From positions 3,348,001-3,412,000 of the forward strand of contig OZ059894.1 in NCBI GenBank assembly GCA_964057225.1: a stretch of 64,000 nt of DNA, in the 5' to 3' direction. Shown here piece after piece: positions 27,666-59,269 of this stretch. The position numbers and the translations under genes were made by a program. Positions within the stretch are counted from its first letter, which is position 1. Each line of letters opens with the position of its first letter. The stretch comes from Auanema rhodensis (Eukaryota; Animalia; Nematoda). Below the pieces are notes generated by a model. The model was given only the letters and a program-made list of their open reading frames with translations. It did not search any database and had not been told where the DNA came from.

Positions 27666-27680
27666 AAGGAAAACCTTGAC

Positions 27681-27869
27681 AAGGAAAACCTTGAGAACTC
27701 CACGAGTCTTTTCATAGATGAGTCGAGAGATACGCTTTACTCCACCACGACGAGCAAGACGACGGATAGCAGGCTTGTTTATACCTTGGATGTTATCACG
27801 GAGAACCTTACGATGGCGTTTGGCTTCTCCCTTTCCAAGACCTTTTCCTCCTTTAACACGTCCAGACAT
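27681..27869 (-). pseudogene. H4: Histone H4, 3'-truncated and mutated (copy 1)
   Basis: [29 protein letters not shown]...RGVLKVFL matches H4 residues 1-62 with G4V, G14E, T30N, G48R, E53K. The C-terminal ~40 residues and stem-loop are missing; the frame runs into satellite and stops at 27585. Confidence 0.93.
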
Positions 27870-27911
27870 GCTGATCGAGCTGTGTGTTGAATAGTAACCC
27901 TAGCATTTACC

Positions 27912-27936
27912 TTATATACTAGTGCTGTAGAGGTCA
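27912..27936 (-). promoter_or_regulatory. H4 core promoter (TATA box); also at 38851-38875 and 43280-43304
   Basis: Minus strand reads TGACCTC-tacagca-CTAGTATATAA, about 43 bp upstream of the H4 ATG. Confidence 0.6.
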
Positions 27937-28305
27937 CCGCGCAAAAACCCATTGTAATCGCCACCAAGCATATTGGCGCTTAATTTTGCTGCTCAATTCT
28001 AAAAATGTATTTTTAAATTTCATATAAACGATAAGAATAACATAAACAACTGTTTATTTGCGAACAAACGTAGAATAGAAGCATGTGAGGCATTAGATAT
28101 GATAACTGTTGTTGTTATCAACATGAAAGCATAATTAATGAAATTCATAAAAAAAAATGAAGATGGATATGGAATATCAAAGACAGGGATTCTCCTTTAC
28201 ATAACAACAAAACATATCATATCAATTAACATTACATAGCAAAAAAAGACAAGACAGACACAGTATTATATTATAAATCATTATGAATACATCAAATTTA
28301 AGTGT

Positions 28306-28321
28306 GGCCCTGAAGAGGGCC
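28306..28321 (-). other. Histone mRNA 3' stem-loop of H3 (copy 1)
   Basis: Minus strand ccaac-GGCCCT-CTTC-AGGGCC-aca: 6-bp stem with 4-nt loop, 26 nt after the H3 stop; typical SLBP-binding element of replication-dependent histone mRNAs. Confidence 0.93.
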
Positions 28322-28347
28322 GTTGGGTTATGTAACGTTTCAAGTGC

Positions 28348-28851
<504 letters not shown>

Positions 28852-29234
28852 TCACTATTTTGGTATTTTGACTATAAATATATTAAATCGGATCATAGCT
28901 ACATAAATAAAGTGTTACAGTAATAAGGACAAAAACTTAGTAACTGTGCGTTGATTGGAATGTAATAGTAAATTGTATTAAAACATTCACTGTTCCATTT
29001 AAAAAATAATTGTCTTCACGTATTATATAGTAAAATTTTTAATTAGAATACACTTGACCAATTATGGATATTTCAACATCATTATAGCAAACATCTTAAA
29101 ATTAACTAAATGCACCACTTGACAAGAGTTACTCATCTCATAAGAATTACATCAATATTAAGAAGCTCAAAAAAACTAACTATAACAACAACCGATCAAC
29201 TGCCATCTGTTTCAAAAATGAAATATCAATCAAA

Positions 29235-30094
29235 ATTATTGAACACGCCAGTTTGTTATTATATTTATTTTTATATTATTTTATATTATATTTGTTTATA
29301 AATATTAGGTCTTGCATGGAAATTCCTTTTGTTCACTAAAAAACACGGTACGCAATTCGGGCAACACATTGTCTGGAATAATGTTGAAGCTCCAGTTAAT
29401 TTATGCAATTAAGTTATTTTGTTAAAAGTTAGCTTTACTTTCGTAATTCATTATTGAACACGCCAGTTTGTTATTATATTTATTTTTATATTATTTTATA
29501 TTATATTTGTTTATAAGTATTAGGTCCTGCATGGAAATTCCTTTTGTTCACTAAAAAACACGGTACGCAATTCGGGCAACACATTATCTGGAATAATGTT
29601 GAAGCTCCAGTTAATTTATGCAGTTAAGTTATTTTGTAAAAAGTTAGCTTTACTTTCGTAATTCATTATTGAACACGCCAGTTTGTTATTATATTTATTT
29701 TTATATTATTTTATATTATATTTGTTTATAAGTATTAGGTCCTGCATGGAAATTCCTTTTGTTCACTAAAAAACACGGTACGCAATTCGGGCAACACATT
29801 GTCTGGAATAATGTTGAAGCTCCAGTTAATTTATGCAATTAAGTTATTTTGTTAAAAGTTAGCTTTACTTTCGTAATTCATTATTGAACACGCCAGTTTG
29901 TTATTATATTTATTTTTATATTATTTTATATTATATTTGTTTATAAGTATTAGGTCCTGCATGGAAATTCCTTTTGTTCACTAAAAAACACGGTACGCAA
30001 TTCGGGCAACACATTATCTGGAATAATGTTGAAGCTCCAGTTAATTTATGCAGTTAAGTTATTTTGTAAAAAGTTAGCTTTACTTTCGTAATTC
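29235..30094. repeat. 215-bp spacer tandem repeat, 4 units
   Basis: gaacacgccag recurs at 29241, 29456, 29671, 29886; two alternating variants (gtctgg/caatt versus atctgg/cagtt). Confidence 0.93.
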
Positions 30095-30149
30095 TTTATG
30101 ATTAAAAGTAGTGAAAGATTCAATATGTTTCTACTTTTTTATTTGGATG

Positions 30150-30919
30150 TTGATTGGAATGTAATAGTAAATTGTATTAAAACATTCACTGTTCCATTTA
30201 AAAAAAAATTGTCTTCACGTATTATATAGTAAAATTTTTAATTAGAATACACTTGACCAATTATGGATATTTCAACATCATTATAGCAAACATCTTAAAA
30301 TTAACTAAATGCACCACTTGACAAGAGTTACTCATCTCATAAGAATTACATCAATATTAAGAAGCTCAAAAAAACTAACTATAACAACAACCGATCAACT
30401 GCCATCTGTTTCAAAAATGAAATATCAATCAAAATTATTGAACACGCCAGTTTGTTATTATATTTATTTTTATATTATTTTATATTATATTTGTTTATAA
30501 ATATTAGGTCCTGCATGGAAATTCCTTTTGTTCACTAAAAAACACGGTACGCAATTCGGGCAACACATTGTCTGGAATAATGTTGAAGCTCCAGTTAATT
30601 TATGCAATTAAGTTACTTTGTTAAAAGTTAGCTTTACTTTCGTAATTCATTATTGAACACGCCAGTTTGTTATTATATTTATTTTTATATTATTTTATAT
30701 TATATTTGTTTATAAGTATTAGGTCCTGCATGGAAATTCCTTTTGTTCACTAAAAAACACGGTACGCAATTCGGGCAACACATTATCTGGAATAATGTTG
30801 AAGCTCCAGTTAATTTATGCAGTTAAGTTATTTTGTAAAAAGTTAGCTTTACTTTCGTAATTCTTTATGATTAAAAGTAGTGAAAGATTCAATATGTTTC
30901 TACTTTTTTATTTGGATGT
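30150..30919. repeat. Tandem duplicate of spacer 28951-30149, carrying two 215-bp units
   Basis: ttgattggaatgtaatag restarts at 30150 (offset 1199); 215-bp units at ~30434 and ~30649. Confidence 0.9.
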
Positions 30920-31060
30920 GACATTACTTCCTTTTTTTTATTTGTGATTTTTCGATCATCTATATTTTAGTTATTATTATTTAAATATACACAATGTATA
31001 TTTAAAACACTTTTGTAGCATCTTGTTATTATGATCATGCTCAAATGAGTTGTTGCAGGT

Positions 31061-31085
31061 TGACCTCCCTGGTCCTAGTATATAA
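31061..31085 (+). promoter_or_regulatory. Second histone-type TATA element; also at 40696-40720 and 45125-45149
   Basis: TGACCTC-cctggtc-CTAGTATATAA: same two blocks and 7-nt spacing as the H4 promoter, on the opposite strand. Confidence 0.5.
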
Positions 31086-31111
31086 TGAAGAAAATTCTTC
31101 ACTTCATCTCC

Positions 31112-32630
31112 TGGTTTGCGCGCTAACTAACATACAGGTCAGCAAAGGGAGTGGCACAATAACAGTTCATTCGTCAGCGTAAGAATAACCATGCCACCCA
31201 AGACATCCGCCAAGGGAGCTGAAGAAACGGAGAGAAGAAGAAGAGAAATTCCTGAAAGTAAGTTTTTAAGTTTTTAATGTTTAAATAATTCAAATAATTT
31301 CGAGTTGAATCAAATGTGTTTATCTATATTTTAGTTATTATTATTTAAATAAACACAATTCTTATAGTAAAGCTTCTAACCAGAGTTGGGAGAATGGGGG
31401 CGTGGTTTGCGCGCTAACTAACATATAGGTCAGCAAAGGAAGTTGTACAATAACAGTTGATTCGTCAGCGTAGGAATAACCATGCCACCCAAGCCATCCG
31501 CCAAGGGAGCTGAAGACAAAGGAGAGAAGAAGAAGAGAAATTCCTGAAAGTAAGTTTTTAATGTTTAAATAATTCAAATAATTTCAAGTTGAATCAAATG
31601 TCTTTATCTATATTTTAGTTATTATTATTTAAATATACACAATTCTTATAGTAAAGCTTCTAACCAGAGTTGGGAGAATGGGGGCGTGGTTTGCGTGCTA
31701 ACTAACATATAGGTCAGCAAAGGGAATTGTACAATAACAGTTGATACGTCAGCGTAGGAATAACCATGCCACCCAAGCCATCCGCCAAGGGAGCTGAAGA
31801 AGAGAAATTCCAGAAAGTAAGTTTATATCAATAGTTTTCATGTAAAACAGCCTTTTATGAGGAAATTTAAAGTTTTTAATGTTTAAATAATTCAAATAAT
31901 TTCAAGTTGAATCAAATGTCTTTATCTATATTTTAGTATATTATTATTTAAATATACACAATTCTTATAGTAAAGCTTCTAACCAGAGTTGGGAGAATGG
32001 GGGCGTGGTTTTCGCACTAACTAACATATAGGTCAGCAAAGGGAGTTGTACAATAACAGTTGATTCGTCAGCGTAGGAATAACCATGCCACCCAAGCCAT
32101 CCGCCAAGGGAGCTGAAGAGAAAGGAGAGAAGAAGAAGAGAAATTCCTGAAAGTGAGTTTTCAAGTTTTTAATGTTTAAATAATTCAAATAATTTCAAGT
32201 TGAATCAAATGTCTTTATCTATATTTTAGTTATTATTATTCAAATATACACAATTCTTATAGTAAAGCTTCTAACCAGAGTTGGGAGAATGGGGGCGTGG
32301 TTTGCGCGCTAACTATCATATAGGTCAGCAAAGGGAGTTGTACAATAACAGTTGATTCGTCAGCGTAGGAATAACCATGCCACCCAAGCCATCCGCCAAG
32401 GGAGCTGAAGAAAAGGAGAGAAGAAGAAGAGAAATTCCTGAAAGTAAGTTTTTAAGTTTTTAATGTTTAAATAATTCAAATAATTTCAAGTTGATTCAAA
32501 TGTCTTTATCTATATCTTAGTTATTATTATTTAAATATACATAATTTTTGTAGTAAAGCTTCTAACCAGAGTTGGGAGAATGGGTAAGGATAAGCTTCTA
32601 ACCAGAGTTGGGAGAATGGGGGAGTGGTTT
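31112..32630 (+). repeat. H2B promoter/5'-end-derived tandem repeat, 5 units (284-319 bp)
   Basis: accATGCCACCCAAG at 31191, 31482, 31766, 32085, 32377. Confidence 0.9.
32085..32150 (+). pseudogene. H2B: Histone H2B N-terminal fragment (representative unit; ~55 such units in the window)
   Basis: Translates MPPKPSAKGAEEKGEKKKRNS*. MPPKPSAKGA is an invertebrate/nematode-type H2B N-terminus, and KKKRNS*K resembles the basic patch before RKESY; no histone fold follows. Confidence 0.75.
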
Positions 32631-38600: not shown

Positions 38601-38604
38601 GAAT
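32631..38604. repeat. 351-bp satellite array (block 2), 17 monomers
   Basis: 5974 bp = 17x351 + two 1-bp T insertions + 5-bp duplicated site. Confidence 0.97.
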
Positions 38605-38619
38605 AAGGAAAACCTTGAC

Positions 38620-38808
38620 AAGGAAAACCTTGAGAACTCCACGAGTCTTTTCATAGATGAGTCGAGAGATACGCTTTACTCCACCACGACGAGCAAGACG
38701 ACGGATAGCAGGCTTGTTTATACCTTGGATGTTATCACGGAGAACCTTACGATGGCGTTTGGCTTCTCCCTTTCCAAGACCTTTTCCTCCTTTAACACGT
38801 CCAGACAT
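38620..38808 (-). pseudogene. H4: Histone H4, truncated (copy 2)
   Basis: Translation identical to copy 1. Confidence 0.93.
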
Positions 38809-39244
38809 GCTGATCGAGCTGTGTGTTGAATAGTAACCCTAGCATTTACCTTATATACTAGTGCTGTAGAGGTCACCGCGCAAAAACCCATTGTAATCGC
38901 CACCAAGCATATTGGCGCTTAATTTTGCTGCTCAATTCTAAAAATGTATTTTTAAATTTCATATAAACGATAAGAATAACATAAACAACTGTTTATTTGC
39001 GAACAAACGTAGAATAGAAGCATGTGAGGCATTAGATATGATAACTGTTGTTGTTATCAACATGAAAGCATAATTAATGAAATTCATAAAAAAAAATGAA
39101 GATGGATATGGAATATCAAAGACAGGGATTCTCCTTTACATAACAACAAAACATATCATATCAATTAACATTACATAGCAAAAAAAGACAAGACAGACAC
39201 AGTATTATATTATAAATCATTATGAATACATCAAATTTAAGTGT

Positions 39245-39260
39245 GGCCCTGAAGAGGGCC
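39245..39260 (-). other. Histone 3' stem-loop (copy 2)
   Basis: GGCCCTCTTCAGGGCC on the minus strand downstream of H3. Confidence 0.93.
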
Positions 39261-39286
39261 GTTGGGTTATGTAACGTTTCAAGTGC

Positions 39287-39790
<504 letters not shown>

Positions 39791-40173
39791 TCACTATTTT
39801 GGTATTTTGACTATAAATATATTAAATCGGATCATAGCTACATAAATAAAGTGTTACAGTAATAAGGACAAAAACTTAGTAACTGTGCGTTGATTGGAAT
39901 GTAATAGTAAATTGTATTAAAACATTCACTGTTCCATTTAAAAAATAATTGTCTTCACGTATTATATAGTAAAATTTTTAATTAGAATACACTTGACCAA
40001 TTATGGATATTTCAACATCATTATAGCAAACATCTTAAAATTAACTAAATGCACCACTTGACAAGAGTTACTCATCTCATAAGAATTACATCAATATTAA
40101 GAAGCTCAAAAAAACTAACTATAACAACAACCGATCAACTGCCATCTGTTTCAAAAATGAAATATCAATCAAA

Positions 40174-40521
40174 ATTATTGAACACGCCAGTTTGTTATTA
40201 TATTTATTTTTATATTATTTTATATTATATTTGTTTATAAATATTAGGTCCTGCATGGAAATTCCTTTTGTTCACTAAAAAACACGGTACGCAATTCGGG
40301 CAACACATTGTCTGGAATAATGTTGAAGCTCCAGTTAATTTATGCAATTAAGTTATTTTGTTAAAAGTTAGCTTTACTTTCGTAATTCATTATTGAACAC
40401 GCCAGTTTGTTATTATATTTATTTTTATATTATTTTATATTATATTTGTTTATAAGTATTAGGTCCTGCATGGAAATTCCTTTTGTTCACTAAAAAACAC
40501 GGTACGCAATTCGGGCAACAC
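40174..40521. repeat. 215-bp spacer repeat, ~1.6 units, followed by T15
   Basis: Second unit breaks at gggcaacac and is followed by T15 (40522-40536). Confidence 0.85.
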
Positions 40522-40746
40522 TTTTTTTTTTTTTTTACTTTTTTATTTGGATGTGACATTACTTCCTTTTTTTTATTTGTGATTTTTCGATCATCTATAT
40601 TTTAGTTATTATTATTTAAATATACACAATGTATATTTAAAACACTTTTGTAGCATCTTGTTATTATGATCATGCTCAAATGAGTTGTTGCAGGTTGACC
40701 TCCCTGGTCCTAGTATATAATGAAGAAAATTCTTCACTTCATCTCC

Positions 40747-41974
40747 TGGTTTGCGCGCTAACTAACATACAGGTCAGCAAAGGGAGTGGCACAATAACAG
40801 TTCATTCGTCAGCGTAAGAATAACCATGCCACCCAAGACATCCGCCAAGGGAGCTGAAGAAACGGAGAGAAGAAGAAGAGAAATTCCTGAAAGTAAGTTT
40901 TTAAGTTTTTAATGTTTAAATAATTCAAATAATTTCGAGTTGAATCAAATGTGTTTATCTATATTTTAGTTATTATTATTTAAATAAACACAATTCTTAT
41001 AGTAAAGCTTCTAACCAGAGTTGGGAGAATGGGGGCGTGGTTTGCGCGCTAACTAACATATAGGTCAGCAAAGGAAGTTGTACAATAACAGTTGATTCGT
41101 CAGCGTAGGAATAACCATGCCACCCAAGCCATCCGCCAAGGGAGCTGAAGACAAAGGAGAGAAGAAGAAGAGAAATTCCTGAAAGTAAGTTTTTAATGTT
41201 TAAATAATTCAAATAATTTCAAGTTGAATCAAATGTCTTTATCTATATTTTAGTTATTATTATTTAAATATACACAATTCTTATAGTAAAGCTTCTAACC
41301 AGAGTTGGGAGAATGGGGGCGTGGTTTGCGTGCTAACTAACATATAGGTCAGCAAAGGGAATTGTACAATAACAGTTGATACGTCAGCGTAGGAATAACC
41401 ATGCCACCCAAGCCATCCGCCAAGGGAGCTGAAGAAGAGAAATTCCAGAAAGTAAGTTTATATCAATAGTTTTCATGTAAAACAGCCTTTTATGAGGAAA
41501 TTTAAAGTTTTTAATGTTTAAATAATTCAAATAATTTCAAGTTGAATCAAATGTCTTTATCTATATTTTAGTATATTATTATTTAAATATACACAATTCT
41601 TATAGTAAAGCTTCTAACCAGAGTTGGGAGAATGGGGGCGTGGTTTTCGCACTAACTAACATATAGGTCAGCAAAGGGAGTTGTACAATAACAGTTGATT
41701 CGTCAGCGTAGGAATAACCATGCCACCCAAGCCATCCGCCAAGGGAGCTGAAGAGAAAGGAGAGAAGAAGAAGAGAAATTCCTGAAAGTAAGTTTTTAAG
41801 TTTTTAATGTTTAAATAATTCAAATAATTTCAAGTTGATTCAAATGTCTTTATCTATATCTTAGTTATTATTATTTAAATATACATAATTTTTGTAGTAA
41901 AGCTTCTAACCAGAGTTGGGAGAATGGGTAAGGATAAGCTTCTAACCAGAGTTGGGAGAATGGGGGAGTGGTTT
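40747..41974 (+). repeat. H2B-derived tandem repeat, 4 units
   Basis: ATGCCACCCAAG at 40826, 41117, 41401, 41720. Confidence 0.9.
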
Positions 41975-43033: not shown

Positions 43034-43048
43034 AAGGAAAACCTTGAC

Positions 43049-43237
43049 AAGGAAAACCTTGAGAACTCCACGAGTCTTTTCATAGATGAGTCGAGAGATA
43101 CGCTTTACTCCACCACGACGAGCAAGACGACGGATAGCAGGCTTGTTTATACCTTGGATGTTATCACGGAGAACCTTACGATGGCGTTTGGCTTCTCCCT
43201 TTCCAAGACCTTTTCCTCCTTTAACACGTCCAGACAT
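43049..43237 (-). pseudogene. H4: Histone H4, truncated (copy 3)
   Basis: Translation identical to copies 1 and 2. Confidence 0.93.
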
Positions 43238-43673
43238 GCTGATCGAGCTGTGTGTTGAATAGTAACCCTAGCATTTACCTTATATACTAGTGCTGTAGAG
43301 GTCACCGCGCAAAAACCCATTGTAATCGCCACCAAGCATATTGGCGCTTAATTTTGCTGCTCAATTCTAAAAATGTATTTTTAAATTTCATATAAACGAT
43401 AAGAATAACATAAACAACTGTTTATTTGCGAACAAACGTAGAATAGAAGCATGTGAGGCATTAGATATGATAACTGTTGTTGTTATCAACATGAAAGCAT
43501 AATTAATGAAATTCATAAAAAAAAATGAAGATGGATATGGAATATCAAAGACAGGGATTCTCCTTTACATAACAACAAAACATATCATATCAATTAACAT
43601 TACATAGCAAAAAAAGACAAGACAGACACAGTATTATATTATAAATCATTATGAATACATCAAATTTAAGTGT

Positions 43674-43689
43674 GGCCCTGAAGAGGGCC
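43674..43689 (-). other. Histone 3' stem-loop (copy 3)
   Basis: GGCCCTCTTCAGGGCC on the minus strand. Confidence 0.93.
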
Positions 43690-43715
43690 GTTGGGTTATG
43701 TAACGTTTCAAGTGC

Positions 43716-44219
<504 letters not shown>

Positions 44220-44602
44220 TCACTATTTTGGTATTTTGACTATAAATATATTAAATCGGATCATAGCTACATAAATAAAGTGTTACAGTAATAAGGACAA
44301 AAACTTAGTAACTGTGCGTTGATTGGAATGTAATAGTAAATTGTATTAAAACATTCACTGTTCCATTTAAAAAATAATTGTCTTCACGTATTATATAGTA
44401 AAATTTTTAATTAGAATACACTTGACCAATTATGGATATTTCAACATCATTATAGCAAACATCTTAAAATTAACTAAATGCACCACTTGACAAGAGTTAC
44501 TCATCTCATAAGAATTACATCAATATTAAGAAGCTCAAAAAAACTAACTATAACAACAACCGATCAACTGCCATCTGTTTCAAAAATGAAATATCAATCA
44601 AA

Positions 44603-44950
44603 ATTATTGAACACGCCAGTTTGTTATTATATTTATTTTTATATTATTTTATATTATATTTGTTTATAAATATTAGGTCCTGCATGGAAATTCCTTTTGT
44701 TCACTAAAAAACACGGTACGCAATTCGGGCAACACATTGTCTGGAATAATGTTGAAGCTCCAGTTAATTTATGCAATTAAGTTATTTTGTTAAAAGTTAG
44801 CTTTACTTTCGTAATTCATTATTGAACACGCCAGTTTGTTATTATATTTATTTTTATATTATTTTATATTATATTTGTTTATAAGTATTAGGTCCTGCAT
44901 GGAAATTCCTTTTGTTCACTAAAAAACACGGTACGCAATTCGGGCAACAC
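44603..44950. repeat. 215-bp spacer repeat, ~1.6 units, followed by T15
   Basis: Same as copy 2; T15 at 44951-44965. Confidence 0.85.
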
Positions 44951-45175
44951 TTTTTTTTTTTTTTTACTTTTTTATTTGGATGTGACATTACTTCCTTTTT
45001 TTTATTTGTGATTTTTCGATCATCTATATTTTAGTTATTATTATTTAAATATACACAATGTATATTTAAAACACTTTTGTAGCATCTTGTTATTATGATC
45101 ATGCTCAAATGAGTTGTTGCAGGTTGACCTCCCTGGTCCTAGTATATAATGAAGAAAATTCTTCACTTCATCTCC

Positions 45176-48100
45176 TGGTTTGCGCGCTAACTAACATACA
45201 GGTCAGCAAAGGGAGTGGCACAATAACAGTTCATTCGTCAGCGTAAGAATAACCATGCCACCCAAGACATCCGCCAAGGGAGCTGAAGAAACGGAGAGAA
45301 GAAGAAGAGAAATTCCTGAAAGTAAGTTTTTAAGTTTTTAATGTTTAAATAATTCAAATAATTTCGAGTTGAATCAAATGTGTTTATCTATATTTTAGTT
45401 ATTATTATTTAAATAAACACAATTCTTATAGTAAAGCTTCTAACCAGAGTTGGGAGAATGGGGGCGTGGTTTGCGCGCTAACTAACATATAGGTCAGCAA
45501 AGGAAGTTGTACAATAACAGTTGATTCGTCAGCGTAGGAATAACCATGCCACCCAAGCCATCCGCCAAGGGAGCTGAAGACAAAGGAGAGAAGAAGAAGA
45601 GAAATTCCTGAAAGTAAGTTTTTAATGTTTAAATAATTCAAATAATTTCAAGTTGAATCAAATGTCTTTATCTATATTTTAGTTATTATTATTTAAATAT
45701 ACACAATTCTTATAGTAAAGCTTCTAACCAGAGTTGGGAGAATGGGGGCGTGGTTTGCGTGCTAACTAACATATAGGTCAGCAAAGGGAATTGTACAATA
45801 ACAGTTGATACGTCAGCGTAGGAATAACCATGCCACCCAAGCCATCCGCCAAGGGAGCTGAAGAAGAGAAATTCCAGAAAGTAAGTTTATATCAATAGTT
45901 TTCATGTAAAACAGCCTTTTATGAGGAAATTTAAAGTTTTTAATGTTTAAATAATTCAAATAATTTCAAGTTGAATCAAATGTCTTTATCTATATTTTAG
46001 TATATTATTATTTAAATATACACAATTCTTATAGTAAAGCTTCTAACCAGAGTTGGGAGAATGGGGGCGTGGTTTTCGCACTAACTAACATATAGGTCAG
46101 CAAAGGGAGTTGTACAATAACAGTTGATTCGTCAGCGTAGGAATAACCATGCCACCCAAGCCATCCGCCAAGGGAGCTGAAGAGAAAGGAGAGAAGAAGA
46201 AGAGAAATTCCTGAAAGTAAGTTTTTAAGTTTTTAATGTTTAAATAATTCAAATAATTTCAAGTTGAATCAAATGTCTGTATCTATATTTTAGTTATTAT
46301 TATTTAAATATACACAATTCTTATAGTAAAGCTTCTAACCAGAGTTGGGAGAATGGAAGCGTGGTTTGCGTGCTAACTAACATATAGGTCAGCAAAGGGA
46401 GTTGTACAATAACAGTTGATACGTCAGCGTAGGAATAACCATGCCACCCAAGCCATCCGCCAAGGGAGCTGAAGAAGAGAAATTCCAGAAAGTAAGTTTA
46501 TATCAATAGTTTTCATGTAAAACAGCCTTTTATGAGGAAATTTAAAGTTTTTAATTTTTAAATAATTCAAATAATTTCAAGTTGAATCAAATGTCTTTAT
46601 GTATATTTTAGTATATTATTATTCAAGTATACACAATTCTTATAGTAAAGCTTCTAACCAGAGTTGGGAGAATGGGGGCGTGGTTTGCGCGCTAACTAAC
46701 GTATAGGTCAGCAAAGGGAGTTGTACAATAACAGTTGATTCGTCAGCGTAGGAATAACCATGCCACCCAAGCCATCCGCCAAGGGAGCTGAAGAAGAGAA
46801 ATTCCAGAAAGTAAGTTTATATCAATAGTTTTCATGTAAAACAGCCTTTTATGAGGAAATTTAAAGTTTTTAATTTTTAAATATTTCAAATAATTTCAAG
46901 TTGAATCAAATGTCTTTATGTATATTTTAGTATATTATTATTCAAGTATACACAATTCTTATAGTAAAGCTTCTAACCAGAGTTGGGAGAATGGGGGCGT
47001 GGTTTGCGCGCTAACTAACGTATAGGTCAGCAAAGGGAGTTGTACAATAACAGTTGATTCGTCAGCGTAGGAATAACCATGCCACCCAAGCCATCCGCCA
47101 AGGGAGCTGAAGAGAAAGGAGAGAAGAAGAAGAGAAATTCCTGAAAGTAAGTTTTTAAGTTTTTAATGTTTAAATAATTCAAATAATTTCAAGTTGAATC
47201 AAATGTCTGTATCTATATTTTAGTTATTATTATTTAAATATACACAATTCTTATAGTAAAGCTTCTAACCAGAGTTGGGAGAATGGAAGCGTGGTTTGCG
47301 TGCTAACTAACATATAGGTCAGCAAAGGGAGTTGTACAATAACAGTTGATACGTCAGCGTAGGAATAACCATGCCACCCAAGCCATCCGCCAAGGGAGCT
47401 GAAGAAGAGAAATTCCAGAAAGTAAGTTTATATCAATAGTTTTCATGTAAAACAGCCTTTTATGAGGAAATTTAAAGTTTTTAATTTTTAAATAATTCAA
47501 ATAATTTCAAGTTGAATCAAATGTCTTTATGTATATTTTAGTATATTATTATTCAAGTATACACAATTCTTATAGTAAAGCTTCTAACCAGAGTTGGGAG
47601 AATGGGGGCGTGGTTTGCGCGCTAACTAACGTATAGGTCAGCAAAGGGAGTTGTACAATAACAGTTGATTCGTCAGCGTAGGAATAACCATGCCACCCAA
47701 GCCATCCGCCAAGGGAGCTGAAGAGAAAGGAGAGAAGAAGAAGAGAAATTCCTGAAAGTGAGTTTTCAAGTTTTTAATGTTTAAATAATTCAAATAATTT
47801 CAAGTTGAATCAAATGTCTTTATCTATATTTTAGTTATTATTATTCAAATATACACAATTCTTATAGTAAAGCTTCTAACCAGAGTTGGGAGAATGGGGG
47901 CGTGGTTTGCGCGCTAACTATCATATAGGTCAGCAAAGGGAGTTGTACAATAACAGTTGATTCGTCAGCGTAGGAATAACCATGCCACCCAAGCCATCCG
48001 CCAAGGGAGCTGAAGAAGAGAAATTCCAGAAAGTAAGTTTATATCAATAGTTTTCATGTAAAACAGCCTTTTATGAGGAAATTTAAAGTTTTTAATGTTT

Positions 48101-51100
48101 AAATAATTCAAATAATTTCAAGTTGAATCAAATGTCGTTATCTATATTTTAGTATATTATTATTTAAATATACACAATTCTTATAGTAAAGCTTCTAACC
48201 AGAGTTGGGAGAATGGGGGCGTGGTTTTCGCACTAACTAACATATAGGTCAGCAAAGGGAGTTGTACAATAACAGTTGATTCGTCAGCGTAGGAATAACC
48301 ATGCCACCCAAGCCATCCGCCAAGGGAGCTGAAGAGAAAGGAGAGAAGAAGAAGAGAAATTCCTGAAAGTAAGTTTTTAAGTTTTTAATGTTTAAATAAT
48401 TCAAATAATTTCAAGTTGAATCAAATGTCTGTATCTATATTTTAGTTATTATTATTTAAATATACACAATTCTTATAGTAAAGCTTCTAACCAGAGTTGG
48501 GAGAATGGAAGCGTGGTTTGCGTGCTAACTAACATATAGGTCAGCAAAGGGAGTTGTACAATAACAGTTGATACGTCAGCGTAGGAATAACCATGCCACC
48601 CAAGCCATCCGCCAAGGGAGCTGAAGAAGAGAAATTCCAGAAAGTAAGTTTATATCAATAGTTTTCATGTAAAACAGCCTTTTATGAGGAAATTTAAAGT
48701 TTTTAATTTTTAAATAATTCAAATAATTTCAAGTTGAATCAAATGTCTTTATGTATATTTTAGTATATTATTATTCAAGTATACACAATTCTTATAGTAA
48801 AGCTTCTAACCAGAGTTGGGAGAATGGGGGCGTGGTTTGCGCGCTAACTAACGTATAGGTCAGCAAAGGGAGTTGTACAATAACAGTTGATTCGTCAGCG
48901 TAGGAATAACCATGCCACCCAAGCCATCCGCCAAGGGAGCTGAAGAGAAAGGAGAGAAGAAGAAGAGAAATTCCTGAAAGTGAGTTTTCAAGTTTTTAAT
49001 GTTTAAATAATTCAAATAATTTCAAGTTGAATCAAATGTCTTTATCTATATTTTAGTTATTATTATTCAAATATACACAATTCTTATAGTAAAGCTTCTA
49101 ACCAGAGTTGGGAGAATGGGGGCGTGGTTTGCGCGCTAACTATCATATAGGTCAGCAAAGGGAGTTGTACAATAACAGTTGATTCGTCAGCGTAGGAATA
49201 ACCATGCCACCCAAGCCATCCGCCAAGGGAGCTGAAGAAGAGAAATTCCAGAAAGTAAGTTTATATCAATAGTTTTCATGTAAAACAGCCTTTTATGAGG
49301 AAATTTAAAGTTTTTAATGTTTAAATAATTCAAATAATTTCAAGTTGAATCAAATGTCTTTATCTATATTTTAGTATATTATTATTTAAATATACACAAT
49401 TCTTATAGTAAAGCTTCTAACCAGAGTTGGGAGAATGGGGGCGTGGTTTTCGCACTAACTAACATATAGGTCAGCAAAGGGAGTTGTACAATAACAGTTG
49501 ATTCGTCAGCGTAGGAATAACCATGCCACCCAAGCCATCCGCCAAGGGAGCTGAAGAGAAAGGAGAGAAGAAGAAGAGAAATTCCTGAAAGTAAGTTTTT
49601 AAGTTTTTAATGTTTAAATAATTCAAATAATTTCAAGTTGAATCAAATGTCTGTATCTATATTTTAGTTATTATTATTTAAATATACACAATTCTTATAG
49701 TAAAGCTTCTAACCAGAGTTGGGAGAATGGAAGCGTGGTTTGCGTGCTAACTAACATATAGGTCAGCAAAGGGAGTTGTACAATAACAGTTGATACGTCA
49801 GCGTAGGAATAACCATGCCACCCAAGCCATCCGCCAAGGGAGCTGAAGAAGAGAAATTCCAGAAAGTAAGTTTATATCAATAGTTTTCATGTAAAACAGC
49901 CTTTTATGAGGAAATTTAAAGTTTTTAATTTTTAAATAATTCAAATAATTTCAAGTTGAATCAAATGTCTTTATGTATATTTTAGTATATTATTATTCAA
50001 GTATACACAATTCTTATAGTAAAGCTTCTAACCAGAGTTGGGAGAATGGGGGCGTGGTTTGCGCGCTAACTAACGTATAGGTCAGCAAAGGGAGTTGTAC
50101 AATAACAGTTGATTCGTCAGCGTAGGAATAACCATGCCACCCAAGCCATCCGCCAAGGGAGCTGAAGAGAAAGGAGAGAAGAAGAAGAGAAATTCCTGAA
50201 AGTGAGTTTTCAAGTTTTTAATGTTTAAATAATTCAAATAATTTCAAGTTGAATCAAATGTCTTTATCTATATTTTAGTTATTATTATTCAAATATACAC
50301 AATTCTTATAGTAAAGCTTCTAACCAGAGTTGGGAGAATGGGGGCGTGGTTTGCGCGCTAACTATCATATAGGTCAGCAAAGGGAGTTGTACAATAACAG
50401 TTGATTCGTCAGCGTAGGAATAACCATGCCACCCAAGCCATCCGCCAAGGGAGCTGAAGAAGAGAAATTCCAGAAAGTAAGTTTATATCAATAGTTTTCA
50501 TGTAAAACAGCCTTTTATGAGGAAATTTAAAGTTTTTAATGTTTAAATAATTCAAATAATTTCAAGTTGAATCAAATGTCTTTATCTATATTTTAGTATA
50601 TTATTATTTAAATATACACAATTCTTATAGTAAAGCTTCTAACCAGAGTTGGGAGAATGGGGGCGTGGTTTTCGCACTAACTAACATATAGGTCAGCAAA
50701 GGGAGTTGTACAATAACAGTTGATTCGTCAGCGTAGGAATAACCATGCCACCCAAGCCATCCGCCAAGGGAGCTGAAGAGAAAGGAGAGAAGAAGAAGAG
50801 AAATTCCTGAAAGTAAGTTTTTAAGTTTTTAATGTTTAAATAATTCAAATAATTTCAAGTTGAATCAAATGTCTGTATCTATATTTTAGTTATTATTATT
50901 TAAATATACACAATTCTTATAGTAAAGCTTCTAACCAGAGTTGGGAGAATGGAAGCGTGGTTTGCGTGCTAACTAACATATAGGTCAGCAAAGGGAGTTG
51001 TACAATAACAGTTGATTCGTCAGCGTAGGAATAACCATGCCACCCAAGCCATCCGCCAAGGGAGCTGAAGAAGAGAAATTCCAGAAAGTAAGTTTATATC

Positions 51101-54100
51101 AATAGTTTTCATGTAAAACAGCCTTTTATGAGGAAATTTAAAGTTTTTAATTTTTAAATAATTCAAATAATTTCAAGTTGAATCAAATGTCTTTATGTAT
51201 ATTTTAGTATATTATTATTCAAGTATACACAATTCTTATAGTAAAGCTTCTAACCAGAGTTGGGAGAATGGGGGCGTGGTTTGCGCGCTAACTAACGTAT
51301 AGGTCAGCAAAGGGAGTTGTACAATAACAGTTGATTCGTCAGCGTAGGAATAACCATGCCACCCAAGCCATCCGCCAAGGGAGCTGAAGAGAAAGGAGAG
51401 AAGAAGAAGAGAAATTCCTGAAAGTGAGTTTTCAAGTTTTTAATGTTTAAATAATTCAAATAATTTCAAGTTGAATCAAATGTCTTTATCTATATTTTAG
51501 TTATTATTATTCAAATATACACAATTCTTATAGTAAAGCTTCTAACCAGAGTTGGGAGAATGGGGGCGTGGTTTGCGCGCTAACTATCATATAGGTCAGC
51601 AAAGGGAGTTGTACAATAACAGTTGATTCGTCAGCGTAGGAATAACCATGCCACCCAAGCCATCCGCCAAGGGAGCTGAAGAAGAGAAATTCCAGAAAGT
51701 AAGTTTATATCAATAGTTTTCATGTAAAACAGCCTTTTATGAGGAAATTTAAAGTTTTTAATGTTTAAATAATTCAAATAATTTCAAGTTGAATCAAATG
51801 TCTTTATCTATATTTTAGTATATTATTATTTAAATATACACAATTCTTATAGTAAAGCTTCTAACCAGAGTTGGGAGAATGGGGGCGTGGTTTTCGCACT
51901 AACTAACATATAGGTCAGCAAAGGGAGTTGTACAATAACAGTTGATTCGTCAGCGTAGGAATAACCATGCCACCCAAGCCATCCGCCAAGGGAGCTGAAG
52001 AGAAAGGAGAGAAGAAGAAGAGAAATTCCTGAAAGTAAGTTTTTAAGTTTTTAATGTTTAAATAATTCAAATAATTTCAAGTTGAATCAAATGTCTGTAT
52101 CTATATTTTAGTTATTATTATTTAAATATACACAATTCTTATAGTAAAGCTTCTAACCAGAGTTGGGAGAATGGAAGCGTGGTTTGCGTGCTAACTAACA
52201 TATAGGTCAGCAAAGGGAGTTGTACAATAACAGTTGATACGTCAGCGTAGGAATAACCATGCCACCCAAGCCATCCGCCAAGGGAGCTGAAGAAGAGAAA
52301 TTCCAGAAAGTAAGTTTATATCAATAGTTTTCATGTAAAACAGCCTTTTATGAGGAAATTTAAAGTTTTTAATTTTTAAATAATTCAAATAATTTCAAGT
52401 TGAATCAAATGTCTTTATGTATATTTTAGTATATTATTATTCAAGTATACACAATTCTTATAGTAAAGCTTCTAACCAGAGTTGGGAGAATGGGGGCGTG
52501 GTTTGCGCGCTAACTAACGTATAGGTCAGCAAAGGGAGTTGTACAATAACAGTTGATTCGTCAGCGTAGGAATAACCATGCCACCCAAGCCATCCGCCAA
52601 GGGAGCTGAAGAGAAAGGAGAGAAGAAGAAGAGAAATTCCTGAAAGTGAGTTTTCAAGTTTTTAATGTTTAAATAATTCAAATAATTTCAAGTTGAATCA
52701 AATGTCTTTATCTATATTTTAGTTATTATTATTCAAATATACACAATTCTTATAGTAAAGCTTCTAACCAGAGTTGGGAGAATGGGGGCGTGGTTTGCGC
52801 GCTAACTATCATATAGGTCAGCAAAGGGAGTTGTACAATAACAGTTGATTCGTCAGCGTAGGAATAACCATGCCACCCAAGCCATCCGCCAAGGGAGCTG
52901 AAGAAGAGAAATTCCAGAAAGTAAGTTTATATCAATAGTTTTCATGTAAAACAGCCTTTTATGAGGAAATTTAAAGTTTTTAATGTTTAAATAATTCAAA
53001 TAATTTCAAGTTGAATCAAATGTCTTTATCTATATTTTAGTATATTATTATTTAAATATACACAATTCTTATAGTAAAGCTTCTAACCAGAGTTGGGAGA
53101 ATGGGGGCGTGGTTTTCGCACTAACTAACATATAGGTCAGCAAAGGGAGTTGTACAATAACAGTTGATTCGTCAGCGTAGGAATAACCATGCCACCCAAG
53201 CCATCCGCCAAGGGAGCTGAAGAGAAAGGAGAGAAGAAGAAGAGAAATTCCTGAAAGTAAGTTTTTAAGTTTTTAATGTTTAAATAATTCAAATAATTTC
53301 AAGTTGAATCAAATGTCTGTATCTATATTTTAGTTATTATTATTTAAATATACACAATTCTTATAGTAAAGCTTCTAACCAGAGTTGGGAGAATGGAAGC
53401 GTGGTTTGCGTGCTAACTAACATATAGGTCAGCAAAGGGAGTTGTACAATAACAGTTGATACGTCAGCGTAGGAATAACCATGCCACCCAAGCCATCCGC
53501 CAAGGGAGCTGAAGAAGAGAAATTCCAGAAAGTAAGTTTATATCAATAGTTTTCATGTAAAACAGCCTTTTATGAGGAAATTTAAAGTTTTTAATTTTTA
53601 AATAATTCAAATAATTTCAAGTTGAATCAAATGTCTTTATGTATATTTTAGTATATTATTATTCAAGTATACACAATTCTTATAGTAAAGCTTCTAACCA
53701 GAGTTGGGAGAATGGGGGCGTGGTTTGCGCGCTAACTAACGTATAGGTCAGCAAAGGGAGTTGTACAATAACAGTTGATTCGTCAGCGTAGGAATAACCA
53801 TGCCACCCAAGCCATCCGCCAAGGGAGCTGAAGAGAAAGGAGAGAAGAAGAAGAGAAATTCCTGAAAGTGAGTTTTCAAGTTTTTAATGTTTAAATAATT
53901 CAAATAATTTCAAGTTGAATCAAATGTCTTTATCTATATTTTAGTTATTATTATTCAAATATACACAATTCTTATAGTAAAGCTTCTAACCAGAGTTGGG
54001 AGAATGGGGGCGTGGTTTGCGCGCTAACTATCATATAGGTCAGCAAAGGGAGTTGTACAATAACAGTTGATTCGTCAGCGTAGGAATAACCATGCCACCC

Positions 54101-57100
54101 AAGCCATCCGCCAAGGGAGCTGAAGAAGAGAAATTCCAGAAAGTAAGTTTATATCAATAGTTTTCATGTAAAACAGCCTTTTATGAGGAAATTTAAAGTT
54201 TTTAATGTTTAAATAATTCAAATAATTTCAAGTTGAATCAAATGTCTTTATCTATATTTTAGTATATTATTATTTAAATATACACAATTCTTATAGTAAA
54301 GCTTCTAACCAGAGTTGGGAGAATGGGGGCGTGGTTTTCGCACTAACTAACATATAGGTCAGCAAAGGGAGTTGTACAATAACAGTTGATTCGTCAGCGT
54401 AGGAATAACCATGCCACCCAAGCCATCCGCCAAGGGAGCTGAAGAGAAAGGAGAGAAGAAGAAGAGAAATTCCTGAAAGTAAGTTTTTAAGTTTTTAATG
54501 TTTAAATAATTCAAATAATTTCAAGTTGAATCAAATGTCTGTATCTATATTTTAGTTATTATTATTTAAATATACACAATTCTTATAGTAAAGCTTCTAA
54601 CCAGAGTTGGGAGAATGGAAGCGTGGTTTGCGTGCTAACTAACATATAGGTCAGCAAAGGGAGTTGTACAATAACAGTTGATACGTCAGCGTAGGAATAA
54701 CCATGCCACCCAAGCCATCCGCCAAGGGAGCTGAAGAAGAGAAATTCCAGAAAGTAAGTTTATATCAATAGTTTTCATGTAAAACAGCCTTTTATGAGGA
54801 AATTTAAAGTTTTTAATTTTTAAATAATTCAAATAATTTCAAGTTGAATCAAATGTCTTTATGTATATTTTAGTATATTATTATTCAAGTATACACAATT
54901 CTTATAGTAAAGCTTCTAACCAGAGTTGGGAGAATGGGGGCGTGGTTTGCGCGCTAACTAACGTATAGGTCAGCAAAGGGAGTTGTACAATAACAGTTGA
55001 TTCGTCAGCGTAGGAATAACCATGCCACCCAAGCCATCCGCCAAGGGAGCTGAAGAGAAAGGAGAGAAGAAGAAGAGAAATTCCTGAAAGTGAGTTTTCA
55101 AGTTTTTAATGTTTAAATAATTCAAATAATTTCAAGTTGAATCAAATGTCTTTATCTATATTTTAGTTATTATTATTCAAATATACACAATTCTTATAGT
55201 AAAGCTTCTAACCAGAGTTGGGAGAATGGGGGCGTGGTTTGCGCGCTAACTATCATATAGGTCAGCAAAGGGAGTTGTACAATAACAGTTGATTCGTCAG
55301 CGTAGGAATAACCATGCCACCCAAGCCATCCGCCAAGGGAGCTGAAGAAGAGAAATTCCAGAAAGTAAGTTTATATCAATAGTTTTCATGTAAAACAGCC
55401 TTTTATGAGGAAATTTAAAGTTTTTAATGTTTAAATAATTCAAATAATTTCAAGTTGAATCAAATGTCTTTATCTATATTTTAGTATATTATTATTTAAA
55501 TATACACAATTCTTATAGTAAAGCTTCTAACCAGAGTTGGGAGAATGGGGGCGTGGTTTTCGCACTAACTAACATATAGGTCAGCAAAGGGAGTTGTACA
55601 ATAACAGTTGATTCGTCAGCGTAGGAATAACCATGCCACCCAAGCCATCCGCCAAGGGAGCTGAAGAGAAAGGAGAGAAGAAGAAGAGAAATTCCTGAAA
55701 GTAAGTTTTTAAGTTTTTAATGTTTAAATAATTCAAATAATTTCAAGTTGAATCAAATGTCTGTATCTATATTTTAGTTATTATTATTTAAATATACACA
55801 ATTCTTATAGTAAAGCTTCTAACCAGAGTTGGGAGAATGGAAGCGTGGTTTGCGTGCTAACTAACATATAGGTCAGCAAAGGGAGTTGTACAATAACAGT
55901 TGATACGTCAGCGTAGGAATAACCATGCCACCCAAGCCATCCGCCAAGGGAGCTGAAGAAGAGAAATTCCAGAAAGTAAGTTTATATCAATAGTTTTCAT
56001 GTAAAACAGCCTTTTATGAGGAAATTTAAAGTTTTTAATTTTTAAATAATTCAAATAATTTCAAGTTGAATCAAATGTCTTTATGTATATTTTAGTATAT
56101 TATTATTCAAGTATACACAATTCTTATAGTAAAGCTTCTAACCAGAGTTGGGAGAATGGGGGCGTGGTTTGCGCGCTAACTAACGTATAGGTCAGCAAAG
56201 GGAGTTGTACAATAACAGTTGATTCGTCAGCGTAGGAATAACCATGCCACCCAAGCCATCCGCCAAGGGAGCTGAAGAGAAAGGAGAGAAGAAGAAGAGA
56301 AATTCCTGAAAGTGAGTTTTCAAGTTTTTAATGTTTAAATAATTCAAATAATTTCAAGTTGAATCAAATGTCTTTATCTATATTTTAGTTATTATTATTC
56401 AAATATACACAATTCTTATAGTAAAGCTTCTAACCAGAGTTGGGAGAATGGGGGCGTGGTTTGCGCGCTAACTATCATATAGGTCAGCAAAGGGAGTTGT
56501 ACAATAACAGTTGATTCGTCAGCGTAGGAATAACCATGCCACCCAAGCCATCCGCCAAGGGAGCTGAAGAAGAGAAATTCCAGAAAGTAAGTTTATATCA
56601 ATAGTTTTCATGTAAAACAGCCTTTTATGAGGAAATTTAAAGTTTTTAATGTTTAAATAATTCAAATAATTTCAAGTTGAATCAAATGTCTTTATCTATA
56701 TTTTAGTATATTATTATTTAAATATACACAATTCTTATAGTAAAGCTTCTAACCAGAGTTGGGAGAATGGGGGCGTGGTTTTCGCACTAACTAACATATA
56801 GGTCAGCAAAGGGAGTTGTACAATAACAGTTGATTCGTCAGCGTAGGAATAACCATGCCACCCAAGCCATCCGCCAAGGGAGCTGAAGAGAAAGGAGAGA
56901 AGAAGAAGAGAAATTCCTGAAAGTAAGTTTTTAAGTTTTTAATGTTTAAATAATTCAAATAATTTCAAGTTGAATCAAATGTCTGTATCTATATTTTAGT
57001 TATTATTATTTAAATATACACAATTCTTATAGTAAAGCTTCTAACCAGAGTTGGGAGAATGGAAGCGTGGTTTGCGTGCTAACTAACATATAGGTCAGCA

Positions 57101-59269
57101 AAGGGAGTTGTACAATAACAGTTGATACGTCAGCGTAGGAATAACCATGCCACCCAAGCCATCCGCCAAGGGAGCTGAAGAAGAGAAATTCCAGAAAGTA
57201 AGTTTATATCAATAGTTTTCATGTAAAACAGCCTTTTATGAGGAAATTTAAAGTTTTTAATTTTTAAATAATTCAAATAATTTCAAGTTGAATCAAATGT
57301 CTTTATGTATATTTTAGTATATTATTATTCAAGTATACACAATTCTTATAGTAAAGCTTCTAACCAGAGTTGGGAGAATGGGGGCGTGGTTTGCGCGCTA
57401 ACTAACGTATAGGTCAGCAAAGGGAGTTGTACAATAACAGTTGATTCGTCAGCGTAGGAATAACCATGCCACCCAAGCCATCCGCCAAGGGAGCTGAAGA
57501 GAAAGGAGAGAAGAAGAAGAGAAATTCCTGAAAGTGAGTTTTCAAGTTTTTAATGTTTAAATAATTCAAATAATTTCAAGTTGAATCAAATGTCTTTATC
57601 TATATTTTAGTTATTATTATTCAAATATACACAATTCTTATAGTAAAGCTTCTAACCAGAGTTGGGAGAATGGGGGCGTGGTTTGCGCGCTAACTATCAT
57701 ATAGGTCAGCAAAGGGAGTTGTACAATAACAGTTGATTCGTCAGCGTAGGAATAACCATGCCACCCAAGCCATCCGCCAAGGGAGCTGAAGAAGAGAAAT
57801 TCCAGAAAGTAAGTTTATATCAATAGTTTTCATGTAAAACAGCCTTTTATGAGGAAATTTAAAGTTTTTAATGTTTAAATAATTCAAATAATTTCAAGTT
57901 GAATCAAATGTCTTTATCTATATTTTAGTATATTATTATTTAAATATACACAATTCTTATAGTAAAGCTTCTAACCAGAGTTGGGAGAATGGGGGCGTGG
58001 TTTTCGCACTAACTAACATATAGGTCAGCAAAGGGAGTTGTACAATAACAGTTGATTCGTCAGCGTAGGAATAACCATGCCACCCAAGCCATCCGCCAAG
58101 GGAGCTGAAGAGAAAGGAGAGAAGAAGAAGAGAAATTCCTGAAAGTAAGTTTTTAAGTTTTTAATGTTTAAATAATTCAAATAATTTCAAGTTGAATCAA
58201 ATGTCTGTATCTATATTTTAGTTATTATTATTTAAATATACACAATTCTTATAGTAAAGCTTCTAACCAGAGTTGGGAGAATGGAAGCGTGGTTTGCGTG
58301 CTAACTAACATATAGGTCAGCAAAGGGAGTTGTACAATAACAGTTGATACGTCAGCGTAGGAATAACCATGCCACCCAAGCCATCCGCCAAGGGAGCTGA
58401 AGAAGAGAAATTCCAGAAAGTAAGTTTATATCAATAGTTTTCATGTAAAACAGCCTTTTATGAGGAAATTTAAAGTTTTTAATTTTTAAATAATTCAAAT
58501 AATTTCAAGTTGAATCAAATGTCTTTATGTATATTTTAGTATATTATTATTCAAGTATACACAATTCTTATAGTAAAGCTTCTAACCAGAGTTGGGAGAA
58601 TGGGGGCGTGGTTTGCGCGCTAACTAACGTATAGGTCAGCAAAGGGAGTTGTACAATAACAGTTGATTCGTCAGCGTAGGAATAACCATGCCACCCAAGC
58701 CATCCGCCAAGGGAGCTGAAGAGAAAGGAGAGAAGAAGAAGAGAAATTCCTGAAAGTGAGTTTTCAAGTTTTTAATGTTTAAATAATTCAAATAATTTCA
58801 AGTTGAATCAAATGTCTTTATCTATATTTTAGTTATTATTATTCAAATATACACAATTCTTATAGTAAAGCTTCTAACCAGAGTTGGGAGAATGGGGGCG
58901 TGGTTTGCGCGCTAACTATCATATAGGTCAGCAAAGGGAGTTGTACAATAACAGTTGATTCGTCAGCGTAGGAATAACCATGCCACCCAAGCCATCCGCC
59001 AAGGGAGCTGAAGAAAAGGAGAGAAGAAGAAGAGAAATTCCTGAAAGTAAGTTTTTAAGTTTTTAATGTTTAAATAATTCAAATAATTTCAAGTTGATTC
59101 AAATGTCTTTATCTATATCTTAGTTATTATTATTTAGATATACATAATTTTTGTAGTAAAGCTTCTAACCAGAGTTGGGAGAATGGGTAAGGATAAGCTT
59201 CTAACCAGAGTTGGGAGAATGGGTAAGGATAAGCTTCTAACCAGAGTTGGGAGAATGGGGGAGTGGTTT
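45176..59269 (+). repeat. H2B-promoter-derived satellite, ~46 units of 292/319 bp in a 1222-bp four-monomer higher-order repeat
   Basis: ATGCCACCCAAG from 45255 to 58980; the ggaagcgtgg variant unit recurs every 1222 bp (ATGs at 47371, 48593, 49815 ... 58369). Confidence 0.95.

Follow-up and report, generated by a model that had tools for sequence, protein, structure and literature searches.

In Drosophila, Stellate and Su(Ste) form gene-derived tandem arrays in heterochromatin, which are transcribed and spliced, keep most of the gene and take part in a known conflict mediated by PIWI-interacting RNAs (piRNAs), while the human D4Z4/DUX4 array is a gene-containing macrosatellite. Closer to the subject of this work, the histone clusters of the newt Notophthalmus viridescens reportedly lie within satellite DNA, into which the loops of lampbrush chromosomes are said to be transcribed by read-through from the gene promoters (Stephenson, Diaz and Gall, 1981). 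The satellite reached by read-through transcription in the newt is satellite 2 (PMC2114352). More generally, the seeds from which satellites are known to grow comprise the spacers of ribosomal DNA (rDNA) and transposable elements (PMC5615363). In the nematode Auanema rhodense, multi-megabase blocks of tandem repeats, with units of 167-504 bp, are eliminated from the soma, and the DNA lost in this way comprises the entire orthogroup of an H3 variant cluster specific to Auanema (10.64898/2026.08.27.747507). Literature searches for a satellite derived from a histone gene found no report. Here, a stretch of 64,000 nucleotides from Auanema rhodensis (contig OZ059894.1, positions 3,348,001 to 3,412,000 of the forward strand; hereafter, the window) is analysed, in which tandem units carrying the start of a histone H2B gene are embedded in another satellite. 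The reading that we hold to be fairly likely is that this locus represents a very recent local amplification of a higher-order repeat, within an already existing H2B-derived repeat family and inside a duplicated histone cassette.

Almost the whole window is made of an AT-rich satellite of 351 bp, with short variants of 197 and 151 bp (Tandem Repeats Finder, TRF), and one type of cassette breaks it three times with identical junctions every time (Table 1). Each cassette contains a truncated H4 gene, an intact H3 gene with its stem-loop, a spacer and the 5' end of H2B with an array of units. On the left, the satellite ends in ...CGCATCGAAT and is followed by a duplicated 15-bp piece of H4 at 27666, 38605 and 43034. 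At the right junction, the last letters of the array are ...GGGGGAGTGGTT, after which TCGAATGCAC begins at 32630, 41974 and 59269. The hexamer TCGAAT flanks copy 1 on both sides (27660-27665 and 32630-32635) and, since the uninterrupted satellite unit reads CGCATCGAATGCAC, 5-6 bp of the target are duplicated at the cassette ends. Despite this TCGAAT duplication, neither terminal repeats nor transposon genes were seen at the cassette, which does not classify as a transposon insertion. Its ends are a break in the H4 coding sequence, with a 15-bp tandem duplication (27666-27695 in copy 1), and the tail of a unit, and the insertion looks like a repair-type event.

TRF and exact anchors delimit 55 head-to-tail units, AACCATGCCACCCAAG being present in all 55, and the anchors distribute them as 5, 4 and 46 among the three arrays, just as the earlier note on this DNA had counted them between the same junctions (5, 4 and about 46). 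Units measure 291, 284, 319 or 292 bp, with a longer terminal unit (332, 333 or 368 bp), and the unit types diverge from each other by 1-5%. Since the first three units are identical across arrays 1-3 and the terminal units are related, the change in unit number was internal and local. At the unit-unit boundary lies GGGGCGTGG, which is absent upstream of the first unit in all arrays. At the right junction of the insert, the 36-bp motif of the unit tail is present in 2 copies in arrays 1 and 2 (32557-32629 and 41901-41973) versus 2.8 in array 3, a small slippage difference. The GC skew, for its part, rises from ~0.03 in the satellite to ~0.16 over the H2B-derived array (46000-60000), owing to the purine-rich sense strand of the units.

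Table 1. Features of the window and their positions (motif positions are counted from the ATG).
Feature	Position	Strand	Basis or remark
Histone cassette copy 1	27666..32629	.	in 351-bp satellite; junctions read directly
Histone cassette copy 2	38605..41973	.	2,142-bp non-array part identical to that of copy 3
Histone cassette copy 3	43034..59268	.	carrier of the expanded array
H2B-derived array 1, 5 units: 291, 284, 319, 292, 332 bp	31112..32629	+	exact anchors
H2B-derived array 2, 4 units: 291, 284, 319, 333 bp	40747..41973	+	exact anchors
H2B-derived array 3, 46 units, 14.1 kb	45176..59268	+	TRF, exact anchors
1,222-bp higher-order repeat (292, 319, 292, 319 bp), 8.8 copies	48222..59000	+	single substitution, at 51017
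36-bp unit-tail motif (AAGCTTCTAACCAGAGTTGGGAGAATGGGTAAGGAT), 2.8 copies, right end of array 3	59159..59259	+	TRF
Representative exon: 35-nt unit tail, junction with GC box, TTTGCGCG, CATATAG, leader, ATG, 21-codon open reading frame	41003..41184	+	
Representative intron GTAAGT...TTATAG	41185..41286	+	joint in run X11
H4-promoter-like module outside the repeat (GACCTC, -129; CTAGTATATAA, -112, relative to the H2B ATG)	31044..31111; also ~40679-40746, ~45108-45175	+	
38-bp spacer patch, identical to unit positions 211-249	30957..30994	+	
H4 fragment, codons 1-63	27681..27869; also 38620-38808, 43049-43237	-	comparison with canonical H4
Intact histone H3, 136 aa	28348..28758; also 39287-39697, 43716-44126	-	identical protein recorded for numerous genomes
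Histone 3' stem-loop downstream of H3	28282..28326; also 39221-39265, 43650-43694	-	RF00032, E 6e-5, below gathering score
GC box	unit: GGGGGCGTGG at -86; H3 promoter: GGGCGGGG at -74; H4 promoter: none entered		from ATG
TTTGCGCG	unit: -76; H4 promoter: -76; H3 promoter: none entered		from ATG
GACCTC	H4 promoter: -66; unit and H3 promoter: none entered		from ATG
TATA-like	unit: CATATAG at -60; H4 promoter: TATATAA at -49; H3 promoter: CATATAA at -57		from ATG

The argument for a recent amplification comes from the composition of array 3, which starts with the three shared first units, goes on with an irregular stretch (46070-48221), where copies of a four-unit higher-order repeat are less regular, and is then occupied by the regular copies of that repeat, ~10 copies in all. 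The regular copies show 1 difference in 10.8 kb, in comparison with the 1-5% that separates the unit types and with the 83-95% identity that the surrounding satellite keeps at a lag of 351, which points either to a very recent amplification or to a mis-sized assembly. The four unit types that compose the higher-order repeat are mosaics of the variants found in array 1, as unequal exchange would give. The cassettes themselves are also close relatives: outside the array, one substitution and three spacer indels set cassette 1 apart from the other two; cassettes 2 and 3 constitute a tandem duplication of 4,429 bp (three satellite units plus the cassette); and cassettes 1 and 3 have in common at least 11 satellite units of their right flanks, with 92-100% identity. 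Identical junctions and co-duplicated flanks are most simply read as a single entry of the cassette into the satellite, followed by segmental duplication together with the flanks. Moreover, the unit tail and TGGTT at the right end of every cassette imply that a unit-unit junction was already present before or at the insertion.

The family is not confined to this locus. A stretch of the window (39760-42400, 2,641 letters) was compared with four public runs, all of them contig sets. In the DNA-type runs X4 and X6, which bear the labels of two other organisms (B and C), pieces of units of the 284/292 type and the unit junction were found with 96-99% identity, and their presence under two other organism labels indicates that the family predates the expansion. 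Neither run has contigs on the segment specific to the 319-bp units, on the first unit or on the TATATAA module, coverage gaps that prove nothing. In a further DNA run, X1, the bins of the unit lie several-fold above the cassette-specific spacer in summed contig depth, a measure that is not copy number. These observations reshape the history given in the earlier note, which saw a new satellite arising here, from a unit that first multiplied to a few copies and then expanded to 14 kb, with the intermediate stages preserved. The amplification is indeed local and very recent, but the family to which it belongs already existed; the growth was internal and local, although it corresponds to one very recent amplification of a higher-order repeat and not to stepwise growth; and the intermediate stages do exist, in that the arrays form a graded series of sizes, from which, however, one cannot read in what direction 4, 5 and 46 units followed each other.

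The link of the unit to H2B is based on a short block of sequence. The first 9 residues of its open reading frame (ORF), MPPKPSAKG, are identical to those of H2B from another nematode (locus L009, a Pfam-histone gene divergent from H2A), and ~27 of the first ~30 bases of both ORFs match. Past approximately codon 12, no homology to the H2B of L009 was found; the rest of the ORF, which extends over 17-21 codons up to its stop, and the AT-rich half of the unit are both without H2B similarity, and that the basic stretch and the 'ES' in the ORF are a remnant of the H2B tail is a guess. The array is also linked to other core histones, given that H3 with its stem-loop and the H4 fragment belong to the same cassette, while no intact H2B is present in the 64-kb window. 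More than half of the unit has no assigned origin, except for a 38-bp patch common with the spacer, on either side of which no significant similarity was found, including into the AT-rich half; the 43-bp unit tail shows no homology to the 117 bp before the first unit (z < 0). The derivation of the unit from the 5' end of an H2B gene, proposed in the earlier note, is thus supported for the leader, the ATG and ~12 codons (27/30 bases, 9 residues), a homology that does not extend to the AT-rich half. Two side observations concern other H2B sequences. The leader is also present in a contig of organism B, which diverges upstream of -45 (loose end at 41678) into a CCAAT...CATAAAGGTCAG variant and may represent a native H2B promoter. 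The H2B gene of L009 (L009:13417-14047), in turn, has an intron after ...VLKQ, and near codon 9 its reading frame seems to be off by 1 base, which the gene call bridges.

The most interesting feature of the family is, in our opinion, the apparent splicing of a read-through RNA with one intron per unit. Run X11 (44,561 contigs, 20.5 Mb) is transcriptome-like, its RNA nature being a guess, and has no contig on the 351-bp satellite, whose summed depth in the DNA runs attains 10^6-10^7. On the compared stretch it has a single contig of 212 nt, whose bases 1-68 correspond to 41720-41787 and whose bases 69-212 correspond to 41003-41146. The joint from 41787 to 41003 (...CCTGAAA/GTAAGT......TTCTTATAG/TAAAGC...) is that of a canonical GT-AG intron between consecutive units, and the exon in the contig crosses the unit junction and takes in the GC box as well as TTTGCGCG and CATATAG. 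Both the donor and the acceptor are kept in all 55 units, with introns of 102, 110 or 154 nt and exons of ~165-182 nt. Altogether, this suggests that the family gives rise to spliced read-through RNA. The possibility that the array is a gene for a repeat protein was considered and rejected: the longest stop-free stretch of the spliced sense strand reaches 39 codons, with stops in all frames, and an antisense open stretch of 170 codons carries no meaning, since the splice sites apply to one strand.

Is each unit, then, a promoter on its own? An affirmative answer would turn each of the ~55 units into an autonomous histone-type promoter firing in S phase, and the array into a sink for factors or a source of cell-cycle-timed RNA. 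Speaking for it, TTTGCGCG occurs 32 times in the window versus 1.8 expected, confined to the units and the H4 promoters and at the same distance from the ATG in both; the TATA-like motif and the GC box of the unit have counterparts in the H3 promoter (-60 versus -57 and -86 versus -74, respectively); the region upstream of the unit ORF aligns weakly but collinearly with those of H4 and H3 (p ~0.03); and the family is expressed in a library in which the surrounding satellite is unseen. We nevertheless regard this explanation as unlikely. The exact TTTGCGCG is kept in just 29 of the 55 units and mutated in the other 26, including two of the four unit types of the higher-order repeat, and the first unit of the array has CATACAG in the TATA-like place. 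In addition, the GC box straddles the unit boundary and, instead of it, the first unit is preceded by 117 bp that match the H4 promoter with a score of 20.5, not equalled by any of 1000 shuffles (p < 0.001). These 117 bp therefore contain the strongest histone-type promoter module, the sole significantly H4-like one (with TATATAA), and it lies outside the repeat. Finally, the putative promoter of the unit is part of an exon in the X11 contig, so that molecule began further upstream. The promoter-like character that had been attributed to the unit is borne out in motif and spacing, which resemble those of the H4 and H3 promoters, but is undermined by the mutation of TTTGCGCG in 26/55 units and by the location of the clearest module out of the repeat. 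The binding of histone-gene factors to the units and their S-phase transcription, also contemplated in the earlier note, are matters of speculation.

Another explanation, which we consider improbable, would do away with the expansion altogether: the 46-unit array would be an artefact or a mis-sizing by the assembler, and the true locus would contain just a few units, as copies 1 and 2 do. A single substitution in 8.8 copies of the repeat is what such an error could produce, and assemblers have difficulty with near-identical cassettes packed into 30 kb. On the contrary, the higher-order repeat contains combinations of variants absent from arrays 1 and 2, the 46070-48221 stretch is irregular, as real arrays are, and the unit depth in X1 is several-fold above that of the spacer, with the caveat that depth is not copy number. 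Slightly less credible is that the GT..AG joint reflects a genomic variant of the unit devoid of the AT-rich part (by a deletion or as a processed copy), picked up in a library that contained DNA. The guessed RNA label of X11 and the lack of an exact counterpart in the window for exon 2 of the contig would fit this possibility, but the deletion would have to end exactly at GTAAGT and TTATAG, in a run that has no satellite contigs and a transcriptome-like size. We would give similarly poor chances to the idea that a multi-exon non-coding RNA gene has just been born here, in which the duplicated promoter and 5' end of a histone gene would have provided, in one step, a promoter-exon-intron module within silent satellite, and whose replication- or germline-timed transcripts would act on the satellite block (e.g., as small-RNA precursors or by marking DNA that is restricted to the germline) or titrate the factors of histone genes. 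The least tenable proposal, that the array is a functional gene for a spliced non-coding RNA or small-RNA precursor of repeat-rich, germline-restricted chromatin, retained because its transcripts would influence the satellite block or the expression of histones, can invoke the precise splicing of the expressed family, the splice sites in all units, the three organism labels and, if the window belongs to such a genome, the germline restriction of such satellite blocks in Auanema rhodense (10.64898/2026.08.27.747507), but it faces the lack of visible constraint past recent common descent, the decay of promoter motifs among units and the copy numbers of 4, 5 and 46 in adjacent duplicates.

The interpretation of the locus as a recent amplification within an older, transcribed family has its own weak points. 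The near-perfect identity of the higher-order copies could come from assembly or polishing and not from biology, and the labels B and C may stand for strains of a single species. Either native DNA from upstream of H2B or foreign material may make up the AT-rich half and the 43-bp tail. As regards the RNA, the evidence consists of a single contig, that its library contains RNA is a guess, and contigs do not have the power to show starts, strand or level. The second exon of that contig has no exact match in the window, where the locus itself may be silent, so the transcript would come from another array or strain and informs about the family and not about the locus. The conservation of the splice sites, furthermore, weighs little among units that diverge by 1-5%.

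With these reservations, the following sequence of events may be proposed for a recent amplification of a pre-existing family, in whose unit the upstream control region, the leader and the opening ~12 codons derive from a replication-type H2B gene. The 351-bp satellite received a piece of a histone cluster, in which H4 is cut at codon 63 and followed by H3, the spacer and the 5' end of H2B, the latter already with units; this piece was then copied together with its satellite flanks, giving rise to almost identical copies. Unequal exchange or replication slippage would have mixed a few unit variants into the four-unit, 1,222-bp higher-order repeat, which would have multiplied around tenfold in copy 3, recently enough to have accumulated one substitution. 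The RNA of the family, as distinct from that of this locus, appears to run in the sense of H2B through successive units, the AT-rich half being spliced out as a GT-AG intron, and the exons left hold the promoter-like part, the leader and the ORF of 17-21 codons, in a spliced product that is presumably non-coding. Transcription would probably start at one or a few histone-type promoters, either the module before the first unit or some of the units, and then read through. No function is needed for the array, which is most simply seen as a neutral outcome of the turnover of repeats, in a region that is rich in them and possibly restricted to the germline.

The remaining parts of the cassettes and the satellite around them deserve some comments. 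The two histone genes have decayed unequally inside one and the same cassette: the H4 fragment, cut at KVFL, matches canonical H4 in 58 of its 63 residues and has 5 replacements, versus an H3 whose protein is identical to that of many other genomes and that retains its stem-loop. This suggests that H3 is still used or that it has been renewed by gene conversion. The ORF in which H4 is fused to the satellite had no record on look-up, and an Rfam scan of 26.5-47.5 kb returned nothing beyond the three histone stem-loops. Between H3 and the array, the spacer is AT-rich and includes a 215-bp tandem repeat, which in cassette 1 is present in 4 + 2 copies (29235-30099 and 30434-30868), resulting from an internal duplication of ~1.2 kb; in cassettes 2 and 3, a poly-T run (40513-40535 and 44942-44964) takes the place of ~105-120 bp of spacer. 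A version of the spacer segment 39778-40185 that differs by ~8% is far deeper than the exact version in the DNA runs X1 and X6 (summed depth in X1: 2,849 versus 421), which indicates that other, commoner histone clusters or cassettes have the same H3-H2B spacer. As for the satellite, the short units of 197 and 151 bp are regularly interspersed in the 351-bp one (1-27665, 32630-38604 and 59269-64000), which also has a higher-order structure of its own, with multi-unit periodicities such as the patterns of 900 bp and 3,048 bp at ~12000-19000.

Satellites are usually traced to transposons, rDNA spacers or anonymous sequence; here, by contrast, the control region and the start codon of an RNA polymerase II (Pol II) gene are visible in the unit. 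The fact that the fragment of the parent cluster is still attached, together with the 4, 5 and 46 units of near-identical duplicates, offers a rare, near-real-time view of the birth of a satellite and of the formation of a higher-order repeat. If the apparent splicing of one intron per unit is taken into account, tandem duplication can build an exon-intron architecture from non-intronic DNA. The array would also be a transcribed island in a satellite that is unseen in the same library and, if the host eliminates DNA in a programmed manner, the locus would be a handle on transcription in germline-restricted repeats.

When compared with the systems described so far, the locus shares a feature with each of them and departs from all. 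Like the germline-restricted blocks of Auanema rhodense, it is organised in tandem arrays whose units fall within the 167-504-bp range, although none of the four published fluorescence in situ hybridization (FISH) probes of this species matches the window within 5 errors. As in the newt, histone genes lie within long satellite arrays and transcription from genic promoters enters tandem repeats, but the newt satellite is unrelated to the histone genes and its clusters are functional, whereas here the unit comes from the 5' end of H2B, the cluster is a broken fragment and the repeat RNA is spliced. Satellites derived from the intergenic spacers of rDNA, which carry duplicated spacer promoters, likewise result from the tandem amplification of a piece that bears a promoter and adjoins genes of a multicopy family; the piece amplified here comes from a Pol II histone gene and takes in the start codon. 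The Stellate and Su(Ste) arrays also derive from a protein-coding gene and are transcribed and spliced; in contrast, just ~12 codons survive in the array of the window. Finally, D4Z4/DUX4 is likewise a higher-order tandem array with a gene-derived, transcribable unit, but a D4Z4 unit is ten times the size of the one described here, which is non-coding and whose transcripts extend over several units, each contributing one intron.

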